Source: Trichosphaerium sp. ATCC 40318
Lineage: Eukaryota > Protista > Tubulinea
Reading direction: 5' to 3'
Assembly (NCBI GenBank): GCA_038496445.1
Contig: JALMLS010000064.1
Location: forward strand, 682,001 to 746,000
Length of the DNA stretch: 64,000 nucleotides
Positions within the stretch are counted from its first letter, which is position 1. Every line of letters begins with the position of its first letter. Positions 1 to 48,808 of this stretch are shown piece after piece. Both the position numbers and the translations under genes were made by a program. The notes beneath the pieces were generated by a model. It searched no databases. It was not told the DNA's origin and worked only from the letters and a program-made list of their open reading frames with translations.

Positions 1-3000
1 TCCAACGTACTTTAACGATCTACACTTCAACAACGAGGTACATCACGCTCTTTCAAAATAAAATTAACAGATGGAATTGCAAAAGTTTGTCTAATGCTGT
101 AGTTAGCCTTGGTGGGCTTGTCAAAACCTAGCAAGTAGTGTTACTAAGTTCACAGAAGCCCTTGATATATTAAAAACATATCCTACAAACAACAGCTTAG
201 CAGGGAAATCTTACTCTATAAATGTTATGCGCACTTGCAAACATATACTTAAATCTAGAGAAAAAAGGCAAATTGGGACAATAGGTGGTGTTATGGGCAT
301 CATACAATCAAGAGGTGATATCGGTATATGCTCAAAACAACAAAGAAAGGAATCCTTTGCGTTTGACAAAAAGTATATCTTTATAGACGATATTTCTCTT
401 ACATCTAAAGATTTCTTCTCTTGGATAGATTCAAACAATACAGCGTAATGATATTTGAATAATTAAGTGAAACAAAGAAAATTTCTATTTGACACCACAT
501 TTTGACATTCTTACTTTTTTCCTGTTTTGATTCTGTTTTTGTTTGACTTTTTTTACAGGACGCAAATAGTGCTTGCAGAGAGCTATTCTCCTCCTGCGGG
601 GGCCGAAGATGTGCATAAAACTTTCAACTGGCAGAACGTCAGACAGTTCGTATTTACAAACACATGCACAACGACCGCTGTTCAACAAGCTTTATTAAAA
701 ATGTCAGCTCTCATGTGGAAGATTATAACACCTATTCCGCCCGTCATTGTGGACAACACACGATCAAAGTTTGTTGGAAAGTACTACACATCTACACATA
801 CGATGTACGAGGGTGTTCTAAAGCGTATTCAGGACAATATAGTTGCAGGAAACAAGCACAATGACATTTCAGTAATAGTAAATATTACAAGCATTCAAAA
901 TTTGACACCAATCATTGAGTTTTTAAATTATAATGGCGTACCAACACAAACAAACCTTCTAATGGCGCAACCTCTAGTAAATGCTTTTCGGCAGGTTTTG
1001 GTACTGTACAACCTCAAAATGAAAAAAAAGGTTGTTGGCGCTACAGCTGCTTTAACAGACATTGCAAAGCATCTATTTCATATTAATACAGACGAGTGGC
1101 CTTTTCATCATTTATTAGATAAACATGTAATGTCAGCTGAACCTTTATGGACTACACTTAATGATCTTGTAAAGAGAAACAAGATGACCTTGTTTTTAGC
1201 AAATAAGAGGATAGGTGGATCTTCAAACGGAGGTGGAAAAGGACAACGTGATAAAACTTTAGCACAATTCCGAAGACAAGTAATAGAGCTTGTCGAACAA
1301 ATATGGAATATATTCACTGCTTTCAACACGAACGAACCAACAGACTACGCAGAAATGGTTGAGGTAACGACAAGTGTAGCCCCTTCTCTTTTTTTCACAA
1401 TTTTTTTTGTAGTTGGTTTATTTTGGATACAAAGAACGTACTGGTATGGTTGATGCAGATGTAGAGTACTTTATTGCGCTATTGAAAAAATGGCAGGTTG
1501 ATTTACCAGAAAATGATTCCGAGGATGCTCGACTGAGTATGTTATTGAATGTAGCATCATATAGCAGAGAAACTATTTCTCCTGTACGAATTCTCTTTTT
1601 TTATTCTTCTAACAAAACCAATTAAAGACCTCAACCTTATTTGTAGACAGCTGCAGATGCAAATATGGTAAAAATACGTGCTGGATTCCAGATACCAGAT
1701 CATAGGCCTATGAGTACTATAATGCTAGCTGTTTATGAGAACTTTCCACCACGTATGTTTTTACTACTGTTTTTATATTCTTGTTCTAATATCTTCCTAA
1801 GCAACAAGCGAAACAAAGCCTGTATGGGAAATACAACAAAGAATTTATCAGTGGATGAAGGTTACATCACGACACTTCACTATAATGAGTGTAGAGCAAT
1901 TTAACGCTCAATCAACTCATTTGGAATCTATTCTTACCAGTACACCTTTCTATACTTTTTTTTGTTGGAATTATTAACTTGGTACTCACTCTTTTCGGTT
2001 AGGTCTTGGTATTAAGTCTATGTTTCAAATAACAGATGCAATGTATGATCCTAAACCGGATAGAAGTTTATCTGACACTGTTAATGCTCCATATCTTGTT
2101 CAAGTAAAGAAACCAATGCTTAAAACACCTGCTATTATAAGTTTCACAATGATAAAGTGCTTCTTGTGCTGTCCATTGCAAGTACGTTATAAATACTTGA
2201 ACCTAATATGTTTGTTTATGAACTAATGTATGTAGTACGCTTGGAGATATGTTGTGAAGGCACCTAGGCATAACTATGTAGAAAAAAATGAAAAGCACAC
2301 AAAATCTGTTGTTTATGGTGATGCTATGCACATTGCTTTAAATAAGGTGAAGCGGCAGACTGTCAGAGGTACTTTATAGTCAGTTTGACTTGTGTACCCT
2401 GCAATCAAATAACTCCATTCTTTATCCAGGCAAAGAAGCAGCTGCTGACACTGAGTACATAATCAAGAGCGTCGAAAAAAAACTAAAACCTCACAAAACG
2501 AAGTTATCTACAAAAGCGTTCAATGAACAGATTGACAATGTTAAGGCAGCTGTAGAGGTACAAAAAATGTCATTATTATGTCACGAATACTTTGAGTACT
2601 AAACAGCGAAAAGGCGTATAAGCGGGAAGAACAAGAAAAGCAGATTCGACTAGAAAAAGAAGGAAAAGATATAAAAACAATGACAGAATGGAGTTTCAGT
2701 ACACATCTAACAAAACACGTGCGAGTAGAAGGTATGTTGAAAGTGTTTTCTTTGGACGTTGTAAATATTGGGCTTTTAAACTAACGGGATATTTTCTACC
2801 AGGTACTGTAGATCGACTTGAGGTGGATAAAGATACCGGCAAAATACGTATTACTGGTAATAAACAATCAAAAAAAAACCTTTGCTCATCATCTTGTTAA
2901 CCAAATATCTCAGATTACAAATCAACAATACATTTACAACCAGGTGAAAGCCTACAATTACTTATGTATGCATGGGCTTGCATGAAAGGTACGCATACCA

Positions 3001-3373
3001 AATATCGAGTGTTGGTGTTATTGAACAACAAAAAAGTCGCACCAAACAAAAAAACTGTTTTGTCTGGGAACTAATTTTTATTTTCTATAGAGTACCGTAG
3101 ACTACCTACGACAATTCAATTCTCTTCAATAAAAAAAAAGAAAACCCCTTCAAAGTCTCATTATGTGACACAAGAAGATATGGACACTGTTGACACATTT
3201 GTACGAACCAAACTTTCATCATTTTGTTCTCTTACTAAAACATCGTTTAGATGAATAATTTCTCAGAGTCTGTTCCTAAATCTTCTTTTATTGCAACACC
3301 TAGTGGACATTGTACAATTTGCGCTCACTCAGCATTTTGTCCAAGTGCACAGATAACTGCTAACGAAAAATAA
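1..3373 (+). CDS. 5'-truncated multi-exon gene: degenerate UvrD/SF1 helicase-like region fused to a C-terminal PD-(D/E)XK nuclease with a 4-Cys Fe-S staple (AdnA/B, AddAB-like)
   Basis: Spliced translation gives SFTMIKCFLCCPLQYAWRY...YGDAMHIAL, GTVDRLEV...IRITDYK, QLLMYAWA and C-terminal GHCTICAHSAFCPS (stop 3371-3373). Upstream KYIFIDDISL and QIVLAESYS resemble degenerate UvrD Walker B and motif IV. Confidence 0.75.
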
Positions 3374-4931: not shown

Positions 4932-6010
4932 ATGGAAGTCGTAACACAGCTTCCTGTTATTGACATTTCGCCTCTTGTCGCATCCAATCCGAAGATTGAA
5001 GATAAAGAGAGGCTGGCAGCGCAATTAGGACAGGCATGTCGTGAATTCGGTTTCTTTTACATAGTTGGGCATGGCGTTAGCGTGGAGTTACAAAAAAACC
5101 TAGAAACAGTCAGTAAATCATTTTTTGAGAAGACTAAGGTACATTACGCTGTGAACGGCAATTAAACAAATAAACCGCATCGTAGGAAGACAAAATGAAG
5201 ATAAAAATGAGTATTTCTGGCAGAGCTTGGCGTGGGTTTTTTCCTGTTGGTGACGAGTTGACATCTGGAAAGCCTGACATGAAAGAAGGCCTTTACTTTG
5301 GAAAAGAACTTGGTCAAGATGATGAAAACGTTAAAAAGTCAGTGCCTCTTCATGGCGCTAATTTATTCCCAAAAGATACTCCAGAAATGAAGAAAATAGT
5401 CCTAGAGTATATGAAACAGCTTACAGAGCTTGGTCACCTTATTATGGGTGGATTGGCGCTTAGTTTAGGATTACCTGAAGAGTATTTTAAGACTAACTTT
5501 ACAAATGATCCTTTGATTCTTTTTCGAATCTTTAACTACCCTTCACGACAACATTGTACCCAGTTTAAAGATGTACAAGATCTATGGGGTGTAGGAGAGC
5601 ATACAGATTATGGTATGCTTACAATTCTAAAGCAAGACAATACTGGTGGGCTTCAAGTCAAAACAAAGTCAAAATGGATTGAGGCTCCACCTATTGATAA
5701 TTCCTTCATCTGTAACATTGGTGATATGTTAGATCGTATCACTGGCGGACGTTTTAGGTCTACGCCGCACCGTGTACGCAATACAACAACAAATGACAGG
5801 CTGTCGTTTCCATTTTTTTTCGACCCAAATTTTAATGCACAAATTAAACTTATAGACGTACCTGACGGTTCTGGTATATCCCATGATTCCGATAGATGGG
5901 ATGGCGTTGATATCCATAAAGTAGAAGGGACTTATGGAGAGTACATATTAAACAAAGTATCAAAGGTTTTCCCACAACTGAGTAGTAGCAACAACTTAAA
6001 GAAACAATAA
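4932..6010 (+). CDS. 2-oxoglutarate/Fe(II)-dependent oxygenase (isopenicillin N synthase/DIOX family)
   Basis: LPVIDIS and ACREFGFFYIVGHG (DIOX_N); HTD...H iron triad (GEHTDYG, STPHRV); RLS 2OG-binding motif. One intron at 5139-5185. Confidence 0.95.
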
Positions 6011-14047: not shown

Positions 14048-17000
14048 CTATACTTGCGAGTCACTTTCTGTTGAGTTTGTGGGTGTAGTTTTACCACTAG
14101 AATTTTCTTTCTTCACTACAGTTTTCACTTCAACGTCATCAGTTGATTGGCCATCATCATGTCCATGACCTTGAAGCCCCTTAACAGGTGCTGGTCCAAT
14201 AAATGACAACACAACAGGGAAGAACACAAGTCCGTGGAAAAGACCAAATACTACTATACCAATAAATTGTCTAAAGAAGATACGAAAGATGGCAGACTGA
14301 GAAGCAGCAAGTATCTACAAAATATGTAAGAAAGTTGCCAAGAAACGCCGAAAAGTCGTGTTATAAGAAAAAAAAAAGAAGTCGTCGTACCAAAATACCC
14401 AAAAGGGTCGAAAACCCGCCATTAAATATTGATGCACCCAAGTTATTAAGCGCTTTGATAGCACGTTCTTGTCGTGTCCCAGTAGAAACAATGAAAGCAT
14501 GTGCCATATGTCCGACATAGTCAAAAGAAAACCCAATCGCCATTACTAAATTTACAACTGATATTGTATTGAGTTTTACATTCCACAAAGCCATAAGACC
14601 CAAGATATCTAAATCAATCTAGAATAGATAAAAGTATTAGTAAAGCGTCTCCTGTTGTATATAATTGTATGTTGTAATCGTTCACAAGCGTACCATTACG
14701 AGAACAATGATGACATAAATGGCCAAAATAGGATTTGCCAATAGAATGTTCGAAATGATGAACACTCCGATCCCCGCTAATGCAAGGTTTGTGTATGCTT
14801 CTCTAGGTATTATCTTCGACGACTCCCAAAAGTCGAATTGGAATGTGTACAAGAACATATCGTTATTAGTAACTGACGCTCTTGAATCATCAAGAACATC
14901 TACATCATTCTCATCTATATTCGCTTCACCATTATAGTAGAATAAAATGCGAGAATTGACAATACCAAGACCATCTTGTGTTGCTAAAGAAATAACGTCA
15001 ATAGAAGAATATAACGAGAAACAGATTTCGACATCCAAAACAAAAGAAAAAAAAGTTGTCTGTTCAGTTTAGTTCGTACCAACAATGTTAGAAATATACT
15101 GTTCTCCTTGTGGTAATGCGAGGAAAGTATTAAATAATCTCTCATAAAATTCAGCACGAGTAGATGCTGTGAAACCCGTTTCATTCATGTGTTTCAAAAA
15201 ATCTTCAAGCCAAGAAGCATACGCTAAAGATTACTTGTCAGTTTTCGATATGAACCTAAAAGAAGAAAAAAGCAAGAACGTACGTATACTTTTCTCTACC
15301 CACTTTACATTATTTACAGCTTGTGTTTGGTCTATGATACGTTGTTGTTCTGAGGGGTCAAAATAATCGATTTCTCCATCGATATAGAGGAATACACTTG
15401 GTCCAATCGATTCAAAGTACTTTTCTTCAAGAACATAAAAATCTTGAAGATAGCTATCATCAGGTGCCAAGTCTTGTAAAGGAAGGCCTTGTTCGATTGT
15501 TGTTGTGTAATAAATAGCAACAGAAACGACAGCGAGTGTAAGAATTATAACACATATCTTCACAGGTAGTTTCATTAATGTAGGTCCGTAATAATGTTTG
15601 ATAAACCAACTTATCCACATTGATCCTACGTTCAAAGTTAACTTTGCTTTAGTTTTGATAAAACATACCTGTCTTTGTCTTGGCTCTCTTTACCCGCTCT
15701 TCTTCGTCTTTAAGTTTAATACACGGTGACAACTCCACTCTGTTTGCTGCAGAGTTTCTCTCGAGAATGGACATCCAAGCCGTGAAGAATGTTATATGTG
15801 AAATGAAACTGAACCCAACCCCAAAAGCGGCATAAATGCAAAAATTTCGGATAGCAGGAAGCTGTGTAGCAGTACCGAGAAGGAAAGCGGCTACATCTGT
15901 GGCACTTGTTACAATAATAGAACCTCCGGCGACACCAAGAGCTGTTTTAACTCGGTCACGTGTGTTCCAATCTAGTGGTGTTCTATCGAATGCATCCACA
16001 AGAACAAATACGTTATCCATGCCAACACCGATAAGAATGAAAGGCATGATAGATACTAACGACGTATAAAATACTCCTAAGAGACTAGACAAGCCAAATG
16101 ATACCAGGATAGAAAGTCCAACGCTCAACTAGAGAAAAAAGTGAGCTACGAGGCGAGGGAAGAAAACGTACAAATCCCATTAAAGCCATAACTATTCTTG
16201 TTCCAGTTAAGTTCCATCGGCTTAACATGATTACAGCGTATACCACAATGAGTATCATAGCAACAGCAAAGAAAAGGATATCTCCTGAGACAGATTTACT
16301 GAGTTCAACATCAAATGACGAAAAGGCTCTTCGTGCTACAGTGATGTACTGAAAATCAGCTTCAGCAAATTTCTATAAAAAAGAGAAAATAGTCAGAAGA
16401 GTTGACGAGGAACACAACTTGGCAAGTATTGGCGTACAAGGAATACATCTTCTTCCCATTTTTCGGATACTTCTAAAGGTAGTACATCCTCTGGCAATAC
16501 AAAGAAAATGACTTGGATTGCTTCAGCTGAAGAAATACTTCCGTTTATACGTTTGATCCCAGACAGAACAGTTGAGCTTATAATCGGGTTACCGTTTGGG
16601 TAGAATCCACCTCCCTGTATAGTAGCGTTGTATCTACCTTCGTCTGATATTATCTCACTTTCGTCGAAGTTCCAGTAAGCCAAGGGGCTACAAAAAACAA
16701 ATATCACGTTAGCCAGATATGAACAAACTGTGTTTGAAGAAGTTATTTTTGTTGAAGGCTGCGCACGTTAAAAGTTCACATTCTGTTGATCCGACACCCT
16801 TTGAACATATACTAGGCCAGCTGTATTCTTTACTATTCACAAGAACAGATGTATTTGTGATTTTATTATGCAGTTCTTGGAGCTCCAACAGAACATTTCT
16901 ATTTGCAAGTATATCGGAACCTAAGGTGGGTTAATACTACCCTCATAAACATTGATGTTGTTATTACCTTCGTTCTTCGCTGTTATAAACAACTGACTTG

Positions 17001-17310
17001 CCCGTGAGTTAAACCCATAAGCTTGTTCGACGATGTTCTAAGTTAAACATGTCAACTTGTACTCTATTTCTATAGTAAAACGTACGCTATCTTTGATTGC
17101 TTCAGATGTCTGAGGTACCCATAATTTAGATGATGATGTCTCCTCGTTGAACCGTAGTAGTCCTAACGAAGCTGCAAGAGTAAAAGCTATAACAGCTAGT
17201 ATGACAGCCCAACTGTGGTCATAGTTGAATGTACCAACACGCCTGAATGCTTTCTCTAATACTTTTTGTATCCAAGCAAGAAACCCAACATATTTTTTCC
17301 ATACGATCAT
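14048..17310 (-). CDS. Patched/NPC1-like sterol-sensing-domain multipass membrane protein (PTCHD-like)
   Basis: PFILIGVGMDNVFVL (SSD GxxxD), GSIIVTSATDVAAF, LPAIRNFCIYAAFG, LVMAIGFSFDYVGH and FHGLVFFPVVLS. Confidence 0.92.
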
Positions 17311-18202: not shown

Positions 18203-21200
18203 TCAAACACGTTGCTTCTTTACAAAATTGACCAAGTTATTATTCATTTCCTGCACCTTTACCCATTCTTCCTTATTCATAGACTCAAATACATTAACCT
18301 GCCCTGTCCAAGGAGGAAAAAACTGCAAAGAAGAGTGAGTAAAAAGAGATTCTTACCAAAAAAAAAAACAGAACAAAAATCAAGTGGTTACCTTTTGAGG
18401 TCCTTGTGCGTTACTATCAGGGTTGCAAGCAGCGTCTATATGCTCTCCAGAAGCAGAAAAATGGAACACTGATTGTTGCATTGTATGATTAACCTCACAA
18501 GACCCAACAACTCTAATGCGCGGTTTGCCCTTTTCTAATAAAGCACCACTATGAGTACATTTTGTGTCGCTTGTAGGATTTCTCTCTAAATGCCATTTCA
18601 TACGCCCTACATTACAACAGTAAACAATTGGGTATAGCTAAAAAACAGGAAGCTGTAACAAACCTTCCAAGTCCGATTGTACAATATCTGCACGTTCTCT
18701 AATGAATGTAGCTTTTCTAGGCCTTCCCATGGAATCGTAACCTTCAAATGTGAAATCAACTACTGTTCCTTCAGTAATTTCATCCTCAGCGTCACAATGA
18801 AGTGAGAAAGGTGGCCCATGAATGGTACTAACAATCAAATAAATAATTGAATAAAAACAGCAATCATTCAAAAAATAAAACGCACGTCATGCATGTATAC
18901 ACGCCCTTCTTTTTCATGCCTTGGACTATACCCTTACAATACTCTGTTTCAATAACATTAAGGACATCTCCCGATTGTCCAGTGGTATAATAGGACTCAG
19001 GAGCGCGCACAACACAACCTCTACCACCTAGAAAATAAATGTAAATTCACAATCTAAACATATTAAAATTTGCGTACCAGCTGACTTAACTTTTGCTTGA
19101 ACACGTCCAAGGTGGTCTGAACTTGTACATTTTATATATTTTACACGTTTAGTCCTATTTAGTTCAGGTCAGTTTGTCAATATATTACATTAAAAACTTA
19201 AAAGGAGTGCTCCATTACGTACAAAGTACAAGACTGGGTGGTTTCTTCTAATTGTTTAATACGTGACTCTAAAGGATCAGCGCTGTGAGGCAGATCAAAA
19301 ACACGGAAGATGACTCCTTCCCAGATGGTGGCATCGCTATACAAGTGTGAGAACAACAAACTCAAAAAAAATCAAAAAAATCTTCAATACCTTGAATTTG
19401 CAGAGCATGCCTTCATTACTTGATCAAACTTACCATGACCAGACCTTTTTGAAAGTAAGTTCAAGATGTTACGTTATTTTTAATATCAAAAAGTACGTAC
19501 CAAAGGACACCGTCAAGTGAAATTGCTGGAATATCTTTACGCATTTCCTCTGATACAACAACTTCTTTACCATAAGTAGTAAACATTGCTGCACCATCCC
19601 AATAAACTCGTATACCATCAAATAGCTCTGATATCCACCTAAAATTATGTTAAGACTTCAATGGACAACGTCATAAACAAAGAAAAAAATAGGAAAAACG
19701 CTTGGAAAAGTAAAAATCAACATACCATCCTGTTGGGTCAATATCTTGTGTCCACATTGAAGCTTGAGCGAGATATTGAACGTCCACATTGTATGTTTGC
19801 TCAATCTCTTTAGCGTCAGAGCTTTCTGTTGGTGGTTGCTCTTCAATCTCACGCAGAGGTTCTTCTTCTTTGACTTCTTGTACTTCCTCAACTTGTGTTT
19901 GTTGTTCAGTTTCTTCTGGCCTTTCTTCGCTTTTAATCTCAGTAACTTCTTCAGCTTGTGCTGGTTTTTCTTCTTCAACAACAGGTTTTGTATCGTTGGT
20001 TTCTGTTGATACACTCTCTGTAGCGTTAGGTTGGCGGCTAGATGTACCACCTTTTGTTGGTTTGTCCGCAGGAATGGTAAGCTCAGCAGACCATAAATCT
20101 GGTCGTGCTTTATGCAACGATGCAAACATTGTTTCAGGCTTTGCGTCCCACCAGTATGGTATACTGATCAACTCAATACCTGCTTGTTTACAGGCATCTC
20201 TAAATTAACTACGTCAACAAAGTGTACAACGAGAAAAACGAAAGAAAAAAAAAGAAAAAAATTTCGCACATTCTCATCTTATCCTCAGCTTGACGAGTTA
20301 TAGGGTCACCCTTTATTATCTGTGATGTGTAATGATGTTGACCTATAGTTTTATTTATTAGGCGTAAACACAAAAGAAACAAATAAGGCTTGTTTGTTGA
20401 GTACCATGATAGTGAATTGCTACTTTGTGTTCCGGTAAATACGCAGTAAACTTATAGTGTTTAATTGTGCTATCTAGGCGTCATTAGTAATCAATAACAG
20501 GATAATTTCTGTCGCTAACGAAGATTGGTAGTGGATATCATACCTAGGTCATTAACATTTGTTATACAACTTTCTGAGAGAATCTCTAAATCAGGCCTTG
20601 ACTCCCTGAAAAACAAAAAAAGTGAGTACAAAACTTTTATAGTGCGGCCTGGTAGGTACCACGTGTGAAAGAAATAAAACTATGTACAACCACCAAAGGC
20701 GTTGTAAATTCCTGTAATACTGGAGCGCAGCAGGACCTGAAACAAACAAAAAAATTGCGTACTTGATTAACTTTGCAACATACGATTGCATTTTAAGCCC
20801 AACTCTCATTTTCTTCTCATCCCAATTGTGCGTTGGATATATCTCTTTCAATACATTAAATAGCGTGTCATAATAAAGAAGAGATGATGTAGCCTTAACA
20901 GTAGCAAGTTGTTTTCTTGTAACAAAGTACCAATCATCAAGTTTCTTAATACCAAATCTTCTTGTTAAGTACTGAATAAAAGCAACACGATTTTCTTTTA
21001 CATGAAAAGTCTTTCTTGGTAAACTACTGAACAACCAAGGTTCCCAATTCCGAAATGGGAATGCAAAAGACAAAATGTTACATGGAGAGCCTTGAAAATG
21101 ATTCAATAACCCAGCACCTTTATATGCTTTAAGGATTTCTTGAACAGTTAATTTATACCAATCTGCTTTTGTTTTCCATCCATTTTTTCTCTTAACATCA

Positions 21201-22299
21201 TAAAGAAACTCTCTAACGTTCTCAGGTTCTAACCAATAATTCTTAGGTAGTATAACAAACTTTCTTGGATTCCATTCAAAATCAGGGTATGCTACTTTAA
21301 GAACATTAACCAAAGACTCGTCATAAGCTTGAAGAATATTTTGAGAATAATATGTTATTTTTTTAGACCACATCATGTACCACTGAGAGATAGAAGATAT
21401 ACCCTCCTTATCTTCAATGTAACGTATAAATTCTTGAACATTTGCTGGTGATTTCCAGTGCTTTTTCTTTAAATCTAGACGCCAAGGGTACCAAGTATCT
21501 TTAGGGAAAGCTGAAGTAAGAACATTAAAAATAGATCCTCCGTAAAGCTTAAGAATAGCATCACCGCGATCACTACGGTACAAATGCTTCTTTTTAAGCT
21601 TATGCCAATCATCTTTGTCACAAACACCAACATCTTCCTTTAACGTATCCAAAAAATCAACAAGTTCCGAAGATGACATGTGTTGCATCTTTCTTTGGTT
21701 CGTAAAGTTCCATTTCTGCCAATTATGTTCAGGATAAAGCGTTGTAACCATATTTAGTACAGAACCCTTATAGAACTGCTTGACAATGTATAGAACACCA
21801 GGGTAATCCTTTAAGTTCTTTGGAGTGATTTTTGTCCAATCGTCTAATTGTTGTACGCCTAGCTTCGCTGAAGACGCTTTTAGGAGAGCGCGTTGCGTAG
21901 AGGGGTCAACCCAGAAGCCTCTACCCTTCGTTTCGAATTTTTGAGGGTCCCACGGGAAATCAGGGTGATATTCTGTCAAAAGTGGCAGTAAATTGCCTCC
22001 TGTATCGCTATATAACTTCATACCGCCCGGTACGCGTCGAATTAGCGCTGCATCCCATTGATACCATTCTGAAGGATCAGAAAAGCTGAAGCGCTTCTCT
22101 ACGTCCGCAATAACCTATCAACGCGTAAGAAGTAAGAAATATAAGATTTCATCGTACGTCAATGGGTTTTGGAACAGAATGGACGCGCCGCGCTTTAGAT
22201 ACCACTACATGCACCGTTAGAATGTTTCCAGTAGTTGTTTGAGGTACCTGCTCTACGCCGATACGATACAAGCGTAGACGAACGCAAGGATGCTAACAT
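18203..22299 (-). CDS. Protein with ~6 Trp-rich ~75-aa repeats, degenerate restriction-endonuclease-like (RAP/Vsr) domain, acidic linker, degenerate ATP-dependent ligase (adenylation + OB) domain and PARP-finger-like tail
   Basis: The repeat DW Trp recurs every 74-77 aa in ORF 20591-22021. Nuclease-like KFTAYLPEHKVAIHYHGQHHY...GIELISIPYWWD. Ligase-like WISELFDGIRVYWDG, ISLDGVLW, VIFRVFDLP and GTVVDFTFEGYDSMGRPRKATFIRER. N-terminus MLASLRSSTLVSYRRRAVVSKARRVHS. Confidence 0.8.
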
Positions 22300-22400
22300 A
22301 GCGTACTAACGACAATCCAAAGTTGTGAATTCCGTACTAACAACTCTGACTTTATTTATTTAATTGTCAAAGATTTCTGTATGATAACGCCACGGTCGCA
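22300..22400. promoter_or_regulatory. Putative bidirectional promoter (101 bp between divergent ATGs)
   Basis: ATG at 22299 (-) and ATG at 22401 (+) of two related genes, separated by an AT-rich spacer. Confidence 0.55.
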
Positions 22401-24708
22401 ATGCTACGCCGTTTTACTACCGTAAAATCAGCACGCCAAAAGCATATTGATAAATTCAACACTATCAGTCAAAAGCTTAACATAATGCACCTAGATGGTT
22501 GGTATGAGGTGTCAGTAAGTGACGTTTGCCAAAAAGGAGGTTCAAATATCGTAATACAGTAAGTAAGAGGATCTTTAGTGCTCTTGTAAGCGTAAAATAG
22601 CGGTTTCAACGGTTCTTTGTTGGATACGTTAAAGAATCTATTCCCGTTTCACAAATGGATCCCGTGGTATTTCGAGTACGTCATAAAAGCGCTGTCGCAT
22701 GTGGCAACTAAAAATACGAAAAGAAACACTCCCAAAACATGTTACCGCCACACATACGCACAAACAGCAAGGCTAGAAGCTATAGCTCAACAACTTGGAG
22801 TTAAAGAACTGGATGACTGGTACAAACCTACCATGACACAATTGAGCGATGGAGGAGCGAGGACAATCCTTCAAAAGTGCGTTTTCATAAAAATCCAAAA
22901 ATTTAACTTTTCAGTTTGACATCTACCTCCTTACATGCGGTAGATACGATAATTCAATGTACCAGCTTTTCTTGGCTTGTTATCCAAACCATAAATGGAA
23001 AAAAACTGGATTCTTGACGTACACAAAGCTCGTTTGTATTCCGATGTTCTAAAAAAAAATTTAGATACATTGAGCGCTTGCACAGGGAGCGATTTGATGA
23101 AGCCGGTAGGCAATTGAATGTCAAGATATTAAGTGATTGGTATACCATATCATTCAGGCGTATAAATGAGTACAACCTAAGTGGCGTGGTAGTATGGTAC
23201 AGTTACAATTGTAAAACCTTTTTTCTGTTAACAGTACTTTATTTTATGTTTTAACTTATCGCCTTGTAGTTACTATTCTGGATCTATGGTTTTGGCACTA
23301 AGATCTATTTACCCTGATTATGATTGGGACATACTAAAGTTTTGGTACAATAATCTTTCTGTCAACCACGTGCAAGTAAAAGACTTATCTTTATTAAACA
23401 AACAGGAGAGCACCTTCAAAATTCTGGAATGACCCTAAAAACCAACGTGATATTATGGATGTTGTTGGAAGTAGAATAAATGTGAAGACACTAGATGATT
23501 GGCGCCCTGTAACAGTAGACAAGTTGGTTGAAAACGGAGGAACGCCAATAATCTCAAAGTAATTCATATCCTCTTCTTCCAAAAATAATAACAGAATAAT
23601 AGATACAACTCACTTCGCTATGCTCTCCAGAGCATTTATGATAAACACCCTTGGAATTTTCCTAAGAAAAATTTACCTGTGGTCAGCGTACCTAGAGGTG
23701 AATGGGGTGATCCAGACCAGCAACGTCGATTCTTAACTAGAGTGGCAGAAACGTTCAATATAGATACTCAAGAAAAATGGTTCAACATATTAAATTTTGC
23801 TTGTCTGCTTACTAATAAATAGGTATCGTGTTTCGATCGATCAATTACAAAGTATAGGAGGAGCTGGTCTTGTAAACTACTTTCCAAGAATGCTTAAATC
23901 TCTTAACTTTGAGAAACCTTGGCATTGGCATAAATTCTCTCGTTCTTCAAAAAAAGCCAAACAACAGTACGGACTTCGTAACGTTTATTTTGTATTATTG
24001 AGTTACCTCCACGAACATAATTATTCTACGCTTTTTTTTCATGCACAAAACAATGAAATTGCAGATAACCCAACATAGTTCTTGTATTGACAATATGTTT
24101 TTCTCAATTTTTTCTTACTTGCTATTAATTAACATCACACTTTATTCCCAAGGTGGTTAAAGCAATGTATTCAGTATATTTATGAAGATGCTGTACTTCA
24201 AGAAGAGCATTTTATAGGGTTGCGTGATTCATCAGGTAGTCCTCTTACAGTCGACATTTTTGTTGCTGAATACAATCTCGCAATTGAATACCAAGGTTTG
24301 TTTAATCAACCACTTCTAGTACTTCACCTCTAAGACCTCTTTCAGGAGAACAACATTTCACTGATGATGCTTTCCCACATAGTACACCTCTTGTATCACA
24401 GGAGCTTCGTGATAACGAGAAATTACACCAATGTAACGCCATGGGTATGCCAAAAACCAAACTAGCAGGAACTTTTGTTAAGGGCTCATTTATTATTATC
24501 AGGTGTAACATTGGTTACAATACCATGTTGGTGGCAATCAGATATTGATAGTATAGCAGCTACACTTGCACATTATGCTCCTCATGCTAAAACAACGTTT
24601 AATTATGATAAGAGCGTACTTCCGCTTATTCAACAAAGAGAATTGAGAAAGCCTTTAACAAGACTGAGTAGTCCTAAGGCTTCGTATACTACATTCAATA
24701 CCCGGTGA
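22401..24708 (+). CDS. Trp-rich repeat protein (~5 repeats) with intact restriction-endonuclease-like (RAP/Vsr) domain
   Basis: Spliced translation: MLRRFTTVKSARQK, repeats at LDGWY/LDDWY/LSDWY/LDDWR/QEKWY, then SSKKAKQQ, LTVDIFVAEYNLAIEYQGEQHF, RDNEKLHQC and GVTLVTIPCWWQSD. The 3' end may extend to ~25000. Confidence 0.8.
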
Positions 24709-25151: not shown

Positions 25152-26207
25152 CTACCAATTTACAGCATGCACGCCTACCAATGACTCTACACCTTCGTCT
25201 GTCACTTTTGTTTCCGTTAAATAAATTGTATGCACACCAGACAATGCTTTCATAGCATCATCTGTTATTTCATAACAATACCTTAAATTTATATTGTAAA
25301 CACCACCTAAAGCTTTGACACCTTCATCTGTTACATTCGTAGCTGATAAATCAATTATATGTACACCTGCTAGTGCCTTAATACCTTCATCTGTAATATG
25401 TTGACAATTATATAACATGATATGGTGTACACCAGCCAATGACTTCAAACCTTCATCTGTCACCTTTGTAGCCGATAAATCGATTTTATGTACCCCAGAC
25501 AATGCCTTTACGCCTTCATCTGTTATTTGCTTTAGTCCCCATAAGTCAATAGTATGAACACCAGCCAAAGCTTTAACGCCATCATCAGTAATTTCCAGTA
25601 CTCCACTCAGTCTGATATTATGAACACCAGCCAAAGCTGTTAGCCCATCATCAGTAACTTTTAGACCTCTCATGTCAATGGTATGAACACCAGCCAAAGC
25701 TTTTATACCTTCATCCGTCACTCTTGTACTATACAAGCCAATAGTGTGTACACCAGCCAAAGCTTTGACGCCTTCATCTGTAATTATTGCGCATCTATAC
25801 AAGTCAATAGTATGAACACCAGACAATGCTTTGATGCCTTCATCTGTAATTCTGAAACAGTTGCGTAAGCTGATATTATGAACACCAGCTAAAAAGCAGA
25901 GGTGCCTATCAGTAATAAAGTCTCTGTATCTAAAACAACTAATAGTTGTATTACGGAGTAAAGGGCTTCCACAAAGTAGCTCTATTTCACTATCTTTGAT
26001 GGGTGCTATGACGTAATATCCTATCTGGTTATGTACTATGTCTCGCATAAAACTACATGTTTGCGCAAACTTAAGTACTTCATGCCCTTGTCTCAGAATA
26101 TGAACGACTAACTCAACTGGGAGCTCTAGTATATCAAATACGTCGTCTGTTGCTTTCTCGAGGAGTGCTAGGTCGTTTCTTTGATGATTTTCACTATTTC
26201 CTTCCAT
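25152..26207 (-). CDS. Intronless F-box + leucine-rich-repeat protein (11-12 short 21-22 aa LRRs)
   Basis: DILELPVELVVHIL F-box. Repeat consensus LxGVHxIxLxxx(x)xITDEGVKA. Confidence 0.92.
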   Translation of the reverse strand: MEGNSENHQRNDLALLEKATDDVFDILELPVELVVHILRQGHEVLKFAQTCSFMRDIVHNQIGYYVIAPIKDSEIELLCGSPLLRNTTISCFRYRDFITDRHLCFLAGVHNISLRNCFRITDEGIKALSGVHTIDLYRCAIITDEGVKALAGVHTIGLYSTRVTDEGIKALAGVHTIDMRGLKVTDDGLTALAGVHNIRLSGVLEITDDGVKALAGVHTIDLWGLKQITDEGVKALSGVHKIDLSATKVTDEGLKSLAGVHHIMLYNCQHITDEGIKALAGVHIIDLSATNVTDEGVKALGGVYNINLRYCYEITDDAMKALSGVHTIYLTETKVTDEGVESLVGVHAVNW

Positions 26208-46446: not shown

Positions 46447-48808
46447 ATGCAGCATGTTGTAAGAAACGTTAAACGGTGAGTTTGATTTGAGACAATGACA
46501 TGTAACGCTAATATCTACTATAGTGCTCGAAACAACAACTGGAGTACTATAGGCGCTCAAATTAGCGCTATTAATAAAATTGGACATTATTTACAAGTAA
46601 AAGAGTTAGATGGATGGTATAACGCGACTGGAGAAGATATTAGTGCGCATGGAGGTAGTGGATTGATACGAGCCAAGTAAGTTAATAAACTTTCTCACCT
46701 GCCTTCTGAAACGCTCTTAGATATCGTGATTCTCTATCTGCTTGTCTTCAAACAGTATACCCGGCGCACAACTGGCAATTATGGAGGTTTACGTGAGTAT
46801 TAAGGCAAACTGTTAGTACTAACATGCAAAAAAAAAGATACACGCCAAAGCGGTTTAGTAAAGATATTAACGGCAAGCGCAAGGCCATAGATTATGTTGG
46901 TCGTGTCTTGGGTATTAAACAACTGAGTGATTGGTACACTGTGACCAATGATCGTGCAATGAAAGCTGGAGGAAGAAATATACTAGTAAGGCACGTGATC
47001 TTGTTACTTTTTTTTTACTCCAACAAGTCTTGAACTTCATCTAAGTGAAGCTCACTTCTTTTTTTAGGTATAATAGATCACTTTATGAATGCCTTCAAGA
47101 TCTACATCCAGAGTATGAGTGGGATCCTATAAAGTTTGTTAGTACACCTGGTAGTTACTGGAAAGATAGCTACAATAAACATCGTGTTTGTGATTCTATT
47201 GCAGAATCTCTTGGTGTTAAAAAGCTCGATGATTGGTATACTGTCACAACTACTCAATTTTCAACACGTGGTGGTGCTCTCCTCAATGCGTACAGCATGA
47301 TCCTAAATTCATAGCTATGCTTAACTGCTACTAGTTATGGTGACTCTATGCCAAGTTTGTTACGATCAGTTTTTCCTTCACACGAGTGGAAACCATGGCG
47401 TTTCAGGTAAGCTATCACTGCACTTGATTATTTATGTTAAACAAGTGTCATCTAGTTGTGTTACCCCTGGGTTTTGGAATAGCTTAGAGAACCAAAGACT
47501 AGCTCTTGAAGACTTTTCAGACCATCAGTACCTTGACTTAAAATGCTTGGATGACTGGTACAATGTTACAGTTACGCAGATTCACTCCTTACATGGATCA
47601 TCCATACTTAGCGCGTATGTTCCTAACGTTAAAACGAATCTAACAAACAATTCTAGGCATTCTAATTCATTGTTGATTTGCCTTCAAGCGGTCTTTCCTG
47701 AACACAAGTGGAAACCTTGGAGATTTAAGTAAGAATATTACTTAAGTTATCTTTAGCTTTGTTGAAGATTAACACTCTTAGATGCGCACCTATGGGTTTC
47801 TGGGATGATGTAAGAAATCATAAGAAAGCCTTTGAAGATGTTAGTGAAGCCTTAGATATTCATGACTTTGACATGTGGAGGAAAATGTCTCCTAATGATT
47901 TTTCTCGTACAGGTTTGAAATCATTTGTTATTCGCCATTATGGTAGTTTAACTAGTGCTCTGAATTTTTTATTCCCTCACTTCAATATTGGTTCTATGAT
48001 ATCAAAAAGAAAGACACACATGAAGTTTTTGGAGCGCGTTTCAAGGCACTTAAACATCAGAAATATGGACAGTTGGTATCGTGTATCTTATGAGCAAATG
48101 GCCGCACATGGTGGATCGAGATTTATGAAGTACTTCCCTCATATGCTTGGTGTTAAATATCCAAACTACAAATGGCAATGGAGGAAGTTTAGAATTGCTT
48201 CAAAGAAAGCAAAACAAAGGTAAACAAAATTTTGAAATAATCACTTATGAACTTTGCTGACTCCTTGTTTTCTCTTTTAGGATTATGTTGCATTGTCTTG
48301 CTGAAATATTCTATAATGATGAGATTATAGAAGAACATGTTATTGGGTTTAAGAACCTTACTGGAGAGTATATCACCGTAGATGCTTTTGTTACATCAAA
48401 GAATATAGCAGTAGAGTATCAAGGTACACTAAATTTCAAGCTTCAAGTGTTGTTAACGTTTTTACTTCAGGCGAACAGCATTATCATGATATGGTATTCC
48501 CGGAGGGTATGTGGGTGACAAGTAGGGAAGCACTAGATGCTGAAAAAATGCAGCAATGCAAAGATTCAGGTGGGTTGAGTTGTTTTTTACCACTGGCTAA
48601 ATATACCTTAGGTATTCGGTTGGTCCATGTACCTTATTGGTGGGATTGCACGGTTGGCTCTTTACGTAGTATTCTATCAAAGAGCTCTTTGGGTATCCTA
48701 GCAAAGGATAACGAACTTAATAGCGCCTCACAAAGTAATGTCTTGACCTCTTAATCATTAAGCACTTCTTTCTTACTTTTTTTTAAACAGGTCTGCATGC
48801 AAGCCTGA
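46447..48808 (+). CDS. Third Trp-rich repeat protein (~6 repeats) with intact restriction-endonuclease-like domain
   Basis: Repeats at LDGWY, LSDWY, LDDWY (x2), FDMWR and MDSWY. Then ASKKAKQR, ITVDAFVTSKNIAVEYQGEQHY, DAEKMQQC and GIRLVHVPYWWD. Start and end approximate. Confidence 0.82.

Follow-up and report, generated by a model that had tools for sequence, protein, structure and literature searches.

We tentatively suggest that two divergently transcribed genes in a 64,000-nucleotide stretch of DNA from Trichosphaerium sp. ATCC 40318 (contig JALMLS010000064.1, positions 682,001 to 746,000; hereafter the window) encode mitochondrial, DNA-directed, repeat-guided nucleases, with the protein of the left gene representing a non-catalytic derivative. 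In this model, the proteins would be imported into mitochondria, as the composition of their N-termini suggests, and a basic repeat array would lie along nucleic acid and position the nuclease. Judging by their motifs, the right protein and a third paralogue would cleave, while the left protein, itself non-catalytic, would most likely bind, block or serve as a partner. In the relatives P0164 from Physarum and P0209 from Cavostelium, an intact fused ligase could reseal the nick, which would make these proteins cut-and-rejoin enzymes. We consider DNA a somewhat better candidate for the target than RNA. The proteins belong to a large, unnamed and unstudied family in which a targeting-like peptide at the N-terminus precedes 4-25 tandem 75-residue repeats and a C-terminal Vsr/DUF2726-type PD-(D/E)XK domain.

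The two genes are intron-rich and lie on opposite strands, with an ATG-to-ATG gap of 101 bp (22300-22400). The left gene (22299..18203, minus strand) has 15 exons and encodes 1050 aa; the right gene (22401..24708, plus strand) has 11 exons and encodes 545 aa. Both models are hand-built predictions from genomic sequence, and their open reading frames stop exactly at the coordinates given in the initial annotation. Each of the 24 introns has GT..AG ends and a length of 42-186 nt, and the splicing is supported by matches to repeat-unit and nuclease HMMs that cross exon junctions. The left and right proteins align with 23.5% identity over 524 aa (blastp, E 1e-39), and the alignment spans the repeats and the nuclease-like domain. 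Thus, the initial description of two divergent genes 101 bp apart that have repeats and a nuclease-like domain in common stands, on the gene models, the alignment and the HMM matches alike.

The Trp-rich repeat unit has a modal length of 75 aa among 952 full units. In the left gene, a single 1352-nt exon (exon 3; 20763..22114, minus strand) encodes all six units, each of which is matched by an HMM built from database relatives (E 7e-12 to 2e-21), and the array has a net charge of +19 and a pI of 9.5. The right protein starts with a short basic stretch, MLRRFTTVKSAR, and continues with five units (five matches with E values of 1e-16 to 1.5e-20; net charge of +20, pI of 9.6), all encoded by exons 1-8 (22401..23966, plus strand). 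The eight introns in this region are all in phase 2 and recur at the same positions of the unit. The left units score 32-63 bits compared to 48-60 bits for the active right paralogue; in other words, the residues that form the scaffold of the repeat are as well conserved in the left protein as in its active counterpart. In the AlphaFold2 model of the relative P0088, each unit consists of five helices. By contrast, PPR, OPR, HPR and FAST repeats are 35-38-residue two-helix hairpins, and Pfam searches with exons, whole relatives and 90 single units gave no match to these families. The repeat unit gave no match in Pfam or the PDB, and its fold has no annotated relative. The claim that the repeat is unlike PPR/OPR/HPR is supported. 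A basic solenoid had also been anticipated, and on this point the arrays are basic (pI ~9.5) and the repeats in the model of the relative are all-helical. Whole-chain Foldseek searches with this model matched only repeat proteins of the T. gondii mitoribosome (E ~0.01).

Within the unit, the polar positions 28, 31, 32, 35 and 36 have high entropy and follow a spacing of i, i+3/4 and i+7, or roughly one turn of a helix, which is consistent with their lying on one helix face. Tandem helical units that vary in number, conservation of an aromatic scaffold and polar positions of high entropy recall PPR, PUF and TALE proteins; however, the unit described here is twice as long and the likeness is one of analogy only. 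The sole named family near the repeat is DUF4046 (PF13255), which appears in the feature search and as a precomputed label on several relatives, and ESM Atlas DUF4046 clusters align to the repeats of the model over 225 residues with a TM of 0.65. By contrast, the best sequence match reaches 12.5 bits (P0188, E 0.23) against a cut-off of 22.8, and a Pfam scan of the window's own repeats gave no DUF4046 match. We therefore do not assign the repeat to DUF4046, the resemblance being at the level of the fold; at best, it is a distant relative. To our knowledge, DUF4046 has no known function, and none of the papers in the library that we searched mentions it.

The nuclease domain follows the repeats in both proteins and is identified by the family HMM in the joined models (E 2.9e-26 for the right protein and 1.8e-25 for the left). 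Exons 9-11 of the right gene (24153..24708, plus strand) encode a PD-(D/E)XK domain with the signature VDIF...AIEYQGEQHF...RDNEK...C...G.TLVTIPCWW, which matches the full family signature ELD.F.P...AFEYQG.QHY...RD.EK...C...GI.LI.IPYWWD. It retains all five residues that are invariant or nearly so in the family (D, E, H, D and K). In the corresponding domain of the left protein (exons 4 to 6 and the first part of exon 7; 20057..20605, minus strand), the same columns read T, H, H, D and R. Because T, H and R thus replace D, E and K, respectively, this domain is predicted to be inactive. A tblastn search of the window with both proteins identified the third paralogue (46447..48754, plus strand; approximate model), which combines repeats with a nuclease domain whose signature is intact (TVDAFV...AVEYQGEQHY...VPYWWD) and lacks an adjacent partner. 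Because the right protein and the third paralogue keep every conserved catalytic residue of the family, both are predicted, at the level of motifs, to be able to cleave. The comparison of family columns bears out the proposal that the right protein retains the D...E-Y-x-G-x-x-H pattern with T and H replacing the acidic residues in the left protein, and thus that one copy would be catalytically intact and the other dead.

The P0088 model (pLDDT 89.5) combines all-helical repeats with an alpha-beta-beta-beta-alpha-beta nuclease core (H407-419, E426-435, E442-449, E454-459, H474-489, E493-498), as in the Vsr-like branch of the PD-(D/E)XK fold, and the domains in the window are matched to the family by the local HMM. 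In VIA-align comparisons, its nuclease domain has Z values of 9.1-9.6 to structures of RAP, I-Bth0305I, Vsr and DUF559 domains. The top matches are a T. gondii mitoribosomal protein (9g6k_Li, Z 9.6), which we take to be a RAP domain, and the RAP domain of FASTKD4 (9gek, Z 9.4), followed by I-Bth0305I (3r3p, Z 9.3), Vsr (Z 9.2) and DUF559 (3hrl, Z 9.1). As judged from this predicted structure, the RNA-associated RAP domains and the DNA enzymes are thus tied.

At the sequence level, DUF2726 (PF10881) is the best match: it matches 41 of the 70 family nuclease domains at E<=1 and has the core motif E-x-[QD]-G-x-x-H in common with them, as do DUF559 and Vsr. Two relatives, P0107 with 28.2 bits and P0108 with 26.8 bits, exceed the gathering cut-off of 24.7 bits; however, most others score 15-21 bits, and the family has its own signature and is joined to a repeat array. 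In the window, each of these domains is distributed over 3-4 short exons. Pfam RAP (PF08373) matches one of the 70 domains (E 0.022) and none of eight domain pieces at E<=10, and we do not assign the domain to RAP by sequence. Many phage and giant-virus proteins labelled 'restriction/homing endonuclease' or 'group I intron protein' also match, with dozens of BFVD matches to the nuclease domain (E 2e-5 to 1e-3, 20-28% identity). Like the proteins described here, I-Bth0305I and the viral endonucleases combine a Vsr-like catalytic domain with a separate long region for target binding, a role that the repeat array would have here. By contrast, they carry zinc ribbons or other N-terminal domains rather than the 75-aa repeat, and they reside in introns or mobile elements whereas the genes here are spliced host genes. 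The nuclease signature itself is widespread in bacteria, archaea and viruses. Thus, the nuclease is DUF2726/Vsr-like by sequence with a tie to RAP by fold, and its nearest relatives are DNA endonucleases of phages and giant viruses.

The left protein continues beyond its nuclease domain into an acidic, Glu-rich linker of ~100 aa (19757..20056, minus strand; net charge -21). The exon that encodes the linker also holds the last part of the nuclease domain and the first part of a ligase domain. This exon (exon 7, 20199-19726) is open throughout, and the nuclease and ligase parts therefore belong to one protein. The ligase domain (end of exon 7 to exon 13; 18664..19756, minus strand) has the nucleotidyltransferase and OB_2 order of the minimal ATP-dependent DNA ligases Lig E and Lig K; it matches the ligase part of Cavostelium P0107 (phmmer, E 1.3e-29), and the exon at 18665-18826 gives a weak DNA_ligase_OB_2 match. 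The ligase fold noted in the initial annotation is thereby corroborated, and by domain order and homology it is of the Lig E type. However, it differs from Lig E and Lig K in its fusion to an upstream repeat array and nuclease, and in its key residues. Aligned against the intact fusions P0164 and P0209, motif I has lost its lysine (K to L), motifs III and IV their glutamates (E to V and E to R, respectively) and motif V both lysines, so that ELFDG, LDGVLW, GRGCVV and VLNVIE stand where P0164 has EKFDG, LDGELW, GEGVML and LRKLKA. The proposed loss of ligase activity thus extends from motif I to motifs III, IV and V. For comparison, P0164 matches NCBIfam PRK09125 (3.5e-44) and the solved Lig E structures 8u6x (1.2e-27) and 4d05.

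The Lig E-type ligase is an addition of one subfamily, and it has decayed repeatedly in the family, suggesting that ligation may not be central. Editosome ligases are of the RNA-ligase type. Because the ligase here is a Lig E-type DNA ligase, the initial likening of endonuclease plus ligase to the core of the RNA-editing machinery is weakened. Lig E is a DNA nick-sealing repair ligase known in Amoebozoa and other eukaryotes (PMC10665377). The left protein ends in an extension of ~110 aa (exons 14-15; 18203..18606, minus strand) common to Cavostelium P0107 and P0183, in which it has the pattern CxxC...HxC...C. This pattern suggests that the extension may bind zinc in those proteins; most of the cysteines are replaced in the left protein.

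With its nuclease residues, four ligase motifs and most extension cysteines lost and its 15-exon frame still open, the left protein is most likely non-catalytic. The same losses, which extend to all catalytic residues that we checked in the nuclease and ligase domains, could also mark a decaying and functionless pseudogene. We consider this highly improbable: the frame extends over 3153 nt without a stop or frameshift, all 14 introns are GT..AG and the repeat units score in the range of those of the active paralogue.

The two proteins begin with basic N-termini that, by composition, look like mitochondrial presequences. Exons 1-2 of the left gene (22158..22299, minus strand) encode an acid-free, Arg/Ser-rich stretch of ~32 aa, with seven R/K and no D/E among the first 25 residues and the first acidic residue at position 33. 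The right protein also has seven R/K among its first 25 residues, and its first acidic residue is at position 17. A composition count of both proteins thus finds the basic, acid-free N-termini, as well as the motifs quoted with them, as originally described. Many relatives known from transcriptomes, among them the Physarum ligase fusion, have acid-free, R/S-rich starts (e.g. ...RSFASSA). Several relatives, however, lack a presequence and start directly with a repeat, which speaks against import.

A phmmer search with exon 3 of the left gene identified 4649 cluster representatives at E<=1e-3. Among 245 fetched relatives, we count 1608 repeat units (median of six per protein), and 158 have the same nuclease domain. 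Members occur among Amoebozoa and some bacteria as well as in Heterolobosea sp. BB2. A bacterial member lies in a cassette with the order UvrD-like helicase, repeat-nuclease, UvrD helicase and Cas4-like nuclease, and another adjoins MutS. Because the same repeat-nuclease architecture occurs in bacteria, we discard the idea of an organelle-specific invention.

The main competitor to a DNA-directed nuclease, which we rate as less likely though still substantial, is that these proteins are organellar RNA-processing or RNA-stabilising factors, as in the initial annotation but with no need for an obligate two-subunit complex. In this scenario, particular mitochondrial transcripts would be bound by the repeats, and the RAP-like tail would either cleave the RNA or simply hold on to it. 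FASTK, HPR-RAP and OPR-RAP proteins consist of helical repeats and a C-terminal RAP domain and function in organellar RNA metabolism. The plan is the same here, with a presequence-like N-terminus, a helical array and a small C-terminal Vsr-like PD-(D/E)XK domain; the two best structural matches of the nuclease are RAP domains, and the whole-chain matches are mitoribosomal. Moreover, the protists in which the family has expanded include some whose mitochondrial RNA biology is unusual, namely Physarum, BB2 and the one studied here, and human FASTKD5, which is built in the same way, cuts RNA in vitro (bioRxiv 10.1101/2024.07.18.603998). By contrast, the 75-residue five-helix unit differs from the 37-38-residue hairpin of these proteins, and this family has bacterial members and DNA-ligase fusions, neither of which we found reported for RAP proteins. 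The likeness put forward in the initial annotation thus holds for the helical array and the nuclease-fold tail but not for the sequence, for which DUF2726 matches 41/70 domains and RAP 1/70. Viral endonuclease matches, a Lig E-type ligase, and helicase, nuclease and MutS neighbours in bacteria speak for DNA; the tie in Z between RAP domains and DNA enzymes tempers both readings, and the RNA cleavage by FASTKD5 speaks against DNA.

An alternative that keeps DNA as the target but not the mitochondrion is that of a selfish or conflict nuclease family, homing-endonuclease-like or defence-derived, acting on nuclear or foreign DNA; the basic N-termini would then not be mitochondrial signals, and pairs and clusters would reflect local duplication. 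Nuclease modules of this kind are typical of the homing or 'restriction' endonucleases of phages and giant viruses, and the one here resembles I-Bth0305I; the family is hugely expanded and fast-evolving (25-35% identity among paralogues), often with decayed catalytic sites. It has members in bacteria and on one short viral-labelled contig, and its paralogues cluster locally, with three in the window. However, many members have classical presequence-like N-termini, the genes contain many introns and lie among ordinary host genes, and none of the PADLOC defence models matches the repeat proteins; we regard this alternative as unlikely. Less likely again is that the arrays mark sites for the BB2-type mitochondrial insertional RNA editing, in the way that PPR proteins mark sites for C-to-U editing. 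The family is present in BB2, Physarum and this genome; however, its expansion in Cavostelium is as large or larger, and further members come from Copromyxa, from bacteria and from clusters labelled Tubulinea or Discosea, in none of which do we know of such editing. In BB2 and Physarum, the choice of editing sites is unexplained, with no sequence motif around them, and editing in BB2 is thought to occur by co-transcriptional stuttering (PMC5421314). Such stuttering needs neither a nuclease nor a ligase.

Returning to repeat-guided nucleases as the preferred reading, the head-to-head arrangement itself recurs only in part. Elsewhere, we find further opposite-strand pairs of family genes, one head-to-head with a gap of 26 bp and two tail-to-tail, and the third paralogue in the window is unpaired; pairing is a lead rather than a rule. 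For the pair described here, the 101-bp divergent arrangement probably brings the two genes under shared regulation. The intergenic region (22300..22400) contains two copies of CGTACTAAC(G/A)AC, 31 nt apart, and this 9-mer occurs three times in the window compared to 0.36 expected.

The two genes of the divergent pair were modelled by hand from six-frame translation and inspection of splice sites. The left gene, on the minus strand, runs from an ATG at 22299 to a stop at 18203 and comprises 15 exons encoding 1050 aa, while the right gene, on the plus strand, runs from an ATG at 22401 to a stop at 24708 and comprises 11 exons encoding 545 aa; the start codons are spaced by 101 bp. All 24 introns of the two genes are bounded by GT..AG and are 42-186 nt long. 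The ends of the models coincide with those in the initial annotation, and all peptides quoted there are found in them. Database and structure searches used single exons or database relatives, and the joined spliced proteins were analysed by local scripts only. The two proteins are 23.5% identical over 524 aa (blastp, E 1e-39), and this homology spans the repeats and the nuclease tail. A 75-position HMM of the repeat unit, derived from 952 complete units of database relatives, matches the left protein six times and the right protein five times (E 7e-12 to 2e-21 each), and the HMM of the family nuclease domain matches them with E 1.8e-25 and 2.9e-26, respectively. Because the matches to both HMMs run across exon junctions, they support the splicing of the models. 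The repeat arrays are strongly basic (net charge +19 and +20, pI ~9.5), and the linker between the nuclease and ligase domains of the left protein is very acidic (net charge -21). All six units of the left gene lie within one exon. In the repeat region of the right gene (introns 22559-24152), all eight introns are in phase 2, with four at unit position ~45, before the conserved Tyr, and two at ~69. The 101-bp intergenic region contains CGTACTAAC(G/A)AC twice, at 22302-22313 and 22333-22344, 31 nt apart, and the 9-mer GTTAGTACG occurs three times in the window with 0.36 expected. The paired copies may represent a promoter element or point to an intron in the 5'-UTR; the word TACTAAC, which also resembles a branch point, is present in an intron of a third paralogue in the window (~46817-46823).

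Family identity and the live or dead status of the domains are fixed by the evidence. The right protein and the third paralogue keep every conserved nuclease residue, and in the left protein the first Asp is replaced by T, the Glu by H and the Lys by R. The C-terminal half of the left protein matches the ligase part of the Cavostelium relative P0107 (E 1.3e-29), and we assign it to the Lig E type of DNA ligase because the related Physarum fusion protein P0164 matches NCBIfam PRK09125 (3.5e-44) and the solved Lig E structures 8u6x (1e-27) and 4d05 (2e-24). Ligase motifs I, III, IV and V are kept in P0164 and in Cavostelium P0209, and some are lost in the relatives P0107, P0175 and P0183. In the left protein, all four are lost and read ELFDG, LDGVLW, GRGCVV and VLNVIE; in its C-terminal extension, which is common to P0107 and P0183, most Cys of CxxC...HxC...C are absent. 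Thus, the division into a right protein with intact nuclease residues and a left protein with substituted nuclease and ligase motifs, as originally claimed, holds. The 15-exon reading frame of the left gene is intact and its repeat scaffold scores are as good as those of the active paralogue; we therefore read the left protein, from its sequence, as a probable pseudoenzyme rather than the product of a pseudogene.

The family to which the pair belongs is real, of considerable size, conserved in its overall plan and undescribed; it includes an unusual subfamily that joins nuclease and ligase and, in this window, a natural pair of one live and one dead gene. When the 450-aa repeat exon of the left gene was searched exhaustively with phmmer, 4649 cluster representatives were returned at E<=1e-3, of which 402 reached E<=1e-30; a homologue search with the same exon by word sharing, which is limited by word sharing and a length band, gave no match. 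The same C-terminal nuclease domain is present in 158 of the 245 relatives fetched, which have from a few up to 25 repeat units per protein (median 6). The unit consensus is W.d.eNqR.fldwLgkkLGik.lEDWY.vt..di..nGG.gLL..Y.gSl.kaL...YPeh.W.pWkF..vP.gF and that of the tail is ELD.F.P.L.LAFEYQG.QHY...RD.EK...C...GI.LI.IPYWWD; in the tail, D, H and D are invariant and E, K and others are at least 90% conserved. Named hosts are Cavostelium apophysatum, with many paralogues, Copromyxa protea, Physarum polycephalum and Heterolobosea sp. BB2, and the neighbours of the family in the ESM Atlas are labelled Tubulinea, Discosea and Evosea. On long environmental contigs, family members sit among ordinary eukaryotic genes. 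One environmental member (L167:13637-15922, minus strand) has two nuclease domains per chain, with signatures at ~283 and ~678.

The repeat-nuclease architecture is also present in clearly bacterial contigs. For instance, in a Chloroflexi MAG (L001:7920-15241), a UvrD-like protein (694 aa), the repeat-nuclease P0157 (725 aa), a UvrD-family helicase (743 aa) and a Cas4-like PDDEXK_1 nuclease (270 aa) are encoded by four reading frames that overlap or abut and adjoin rpsF-ssb-rpsR. This cassette is possibly a bacterial module for DNA repair or defence that has yet to be characterised. Its UvrD-like helicases and Cas4-like nuclease have no relative in the window at E<=0.01 (tblastn); the AddAB-like gene at window 1-3373 was included in this comparison and was unmatched. 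Among other bacterial members, one adjoins mutS and another lies among two-component genes. A related-locus search with the full family alignment was keyed on the nuclease motif and returned mostly nuclease-only proteins.

A single-sequence AlphaFold model of the repeat exon (pLDDT 39) was set aside for a model of the 544-aa Cavostelium relative P0088 based on an 88-sequence alignment (pLDDT 89.5, pTM 0.68). In this model, each repeat unit consists of one long and four short helices, and the tail is an alpha-beta-beta-beta-alpha-beta-alpha domain. VIA-align of the model against 48,161 chains gave matches covering residues ~404-528: 9g6k_Li, a T. gondii mitoribosomal protein chain whose matched region we take to be a RAP domain (Z 9.6), the FAST1-FAST2-RAP module of FASTKD4 (9gek, Z 9.4), the homing endonuclease I-Bth0305I (3r3p, Z 9.3), Vsr (1cw0, Z 9.2) and the putative endonuclease-like protein NGO0050 (3hrl, Z 9.1), which we take to be a member of the DUF559 family. 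The RAP, I-Bth0305I, Vsr and DUF559 chains are thus tied. Whole-chain Foldseek matches were to T. gondii mitoribosome chains only (E ~0.01), presumably helical-repeat proteins. Compared with viral models, the tail gave dozens of matches (E 2e-5 to 1e-3, 20-28% identity) to phage and giant virus proteins annotated as restriction endonuclease, homing endonuclease, group I intron protein or DUF559. Among 70 family tails, Pfam matched DUF2726 in 41 and RAP in one, and two relatives exceeded the DUF2726 cut-off. The repeat had no match in Pfam or among PDB sequences: Pfam searches with single exons of both genes left the repeats unmatched and gave only a weak OB_2 match, profile searches of PDB sequences found nothing meaningful for the complete family, for one repeat unit or for the nuclease domain, and no PADLOC or NCBIfam model matched the repeat proteins. 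The nearest named family is DUF4046 (an Atlas fold match with TM 0.65 and a faint 12.5-bit match), which is not mentioned in the literature searched. We do not claim the repeat fold as new: the Foldseek and VIA-align matches listed for P0088 are to the nuclease domain.

The N-terminus of the third paralogue (window ~46447-48754, plus strand) is short and basic (MQHVVRNVKRARNNN, after a first intron of 47 nt), and no partner gene adjoins this paralogue in the window. Pairing was surveyed at four environmental eukaryote loci, of which L167 and L006 were biased picks with two hits on one contig and L168 was chosen without knowledge of a partner gene. Opposite-strand pairs of family genes are present at three of them, and the L004 gene is alone. 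The head-to-head arrangement expected among other family members was found once, at L168:7665-13168 on an amoeba-like contig of 736 kb, where 26 bp separate genes for proteins of 39% identity with both nuclease motifs intact; the pairs at L167 and L006 are tail-to-tail. Members of the environmental pairs are 31-46% identical to each other and all keep the nuclease motif, and among the pairs examined a live/dead pair occurs in this window only. Thus, pairing is recurrent in the family and not obligatory, because the L004 gene and the third paralogue are unpaired.

In animals, plants, algae and apicomplexans, organellar gene expression relies mainly on helical-repeat proteins that carry a nuclease-fold tail. 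To our knowledge, little has been learnt about their counterparts in Amoebozoa and Heterolobosea. The mitochondrial genetics of these lineages is among the strangest, including insertional editing of the Physarum and BB2 types. Unlike the known organellar proteins, the family described here has a different repeat and a nuclease nearer to viral DNA endonucleases, and the combination, in some members, of a nuclease and an intact DNA ligase on one chain was not found described. Both N-termini of the window pair are acid-free and Arg/Ser-rich, a composition like that of mitochondrial presequences, and starts of similar composition occur in many complete transcriptome relatives (Physarum MLSSKARTSTLCLHSLFNHHRSFAQ, Cavostelium ...GLFRSFASSA); other relatives start straight with the repeat.

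The substrate may be either DNA or RNA. DNA is favoured by the DNA-ligase fusions, by the genes next to the bacterial members and by the sequence kinship of the tail with DNA endonucleases of viruses and prokaryotes; RNA is favoured by the overall plan of the proteins, the structural ties to RAP and the unusual RNA biology of mitochondria in several host lineages, as well as by the finding that FASTKD5 cleaves RNA in vitro (bioRxiv 10.1101/2024.07.18.603998). An editosome-like pair of RNA nuclease and ligase, the analogy drawn in the initial annotation, is rejected on the type of the ligase, which is that of Lig E DNA ligases. Site recognition in BB2 insertional editing is unexplained (PMC5421314), and we give a link of the family to this process a low probability because the family has expanded to at least the same extent in Cavostelium and is present in other amoebozoans and in bacteria; a tie specifically to insertional editing is rejected on this distribution. 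Overall, what was first observed is confirmed, and its interpretation is supported in part; the mitochondrial, code-reading complex of two subunits is a proposal. We speculate, while considering it rather improbable, that the 75-aa repeat would be a modular scaffold of a new type for reading nucleic acids, comparable to PPR, PUF or TALE, and that in amoebae and some bacteria it would guide a nuclease, joined in one subfamily by a DNA ligase, to chosen mitochondrial nucleic-acid sites; the opposite-strand pairs would then encode two-array partners, here an active cutter and a dead scaffold. Such proteins would form a natural programmable cut-and-reseal system, and could provide the site recognition so far missing from the remodelling of mitochondrial genomes or transcripts in these protists. 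Should the arrays read sequence, they would add a new scaffold for recognition, together with concrete candidates for site selection in mtDNA or mtRNA; if they do not, a sizeable unannotated family still deserves a Pfam entry. The live/dead pair is a natural starting point for experiments.

Elsewhere in the window, the ORF at 5195-6010 on the plus strand encodes a 2OG-Fe(II) oxygenase domain (E 7.8e-25) as well as a DIOX_N domain, and several ORF pieces at 15649-17310 on the minus strand resemble, by eye, a multi-pass membrane protein of the Patched/sterol-sensing type. An intronless 351-aa ORF at 25152-26207 on the minus strand consists of leucine-rich repeats of ~24 residues (AGVHTIDL...TDEG.KAL; Pfam LRR_6, E 3.8e-26).
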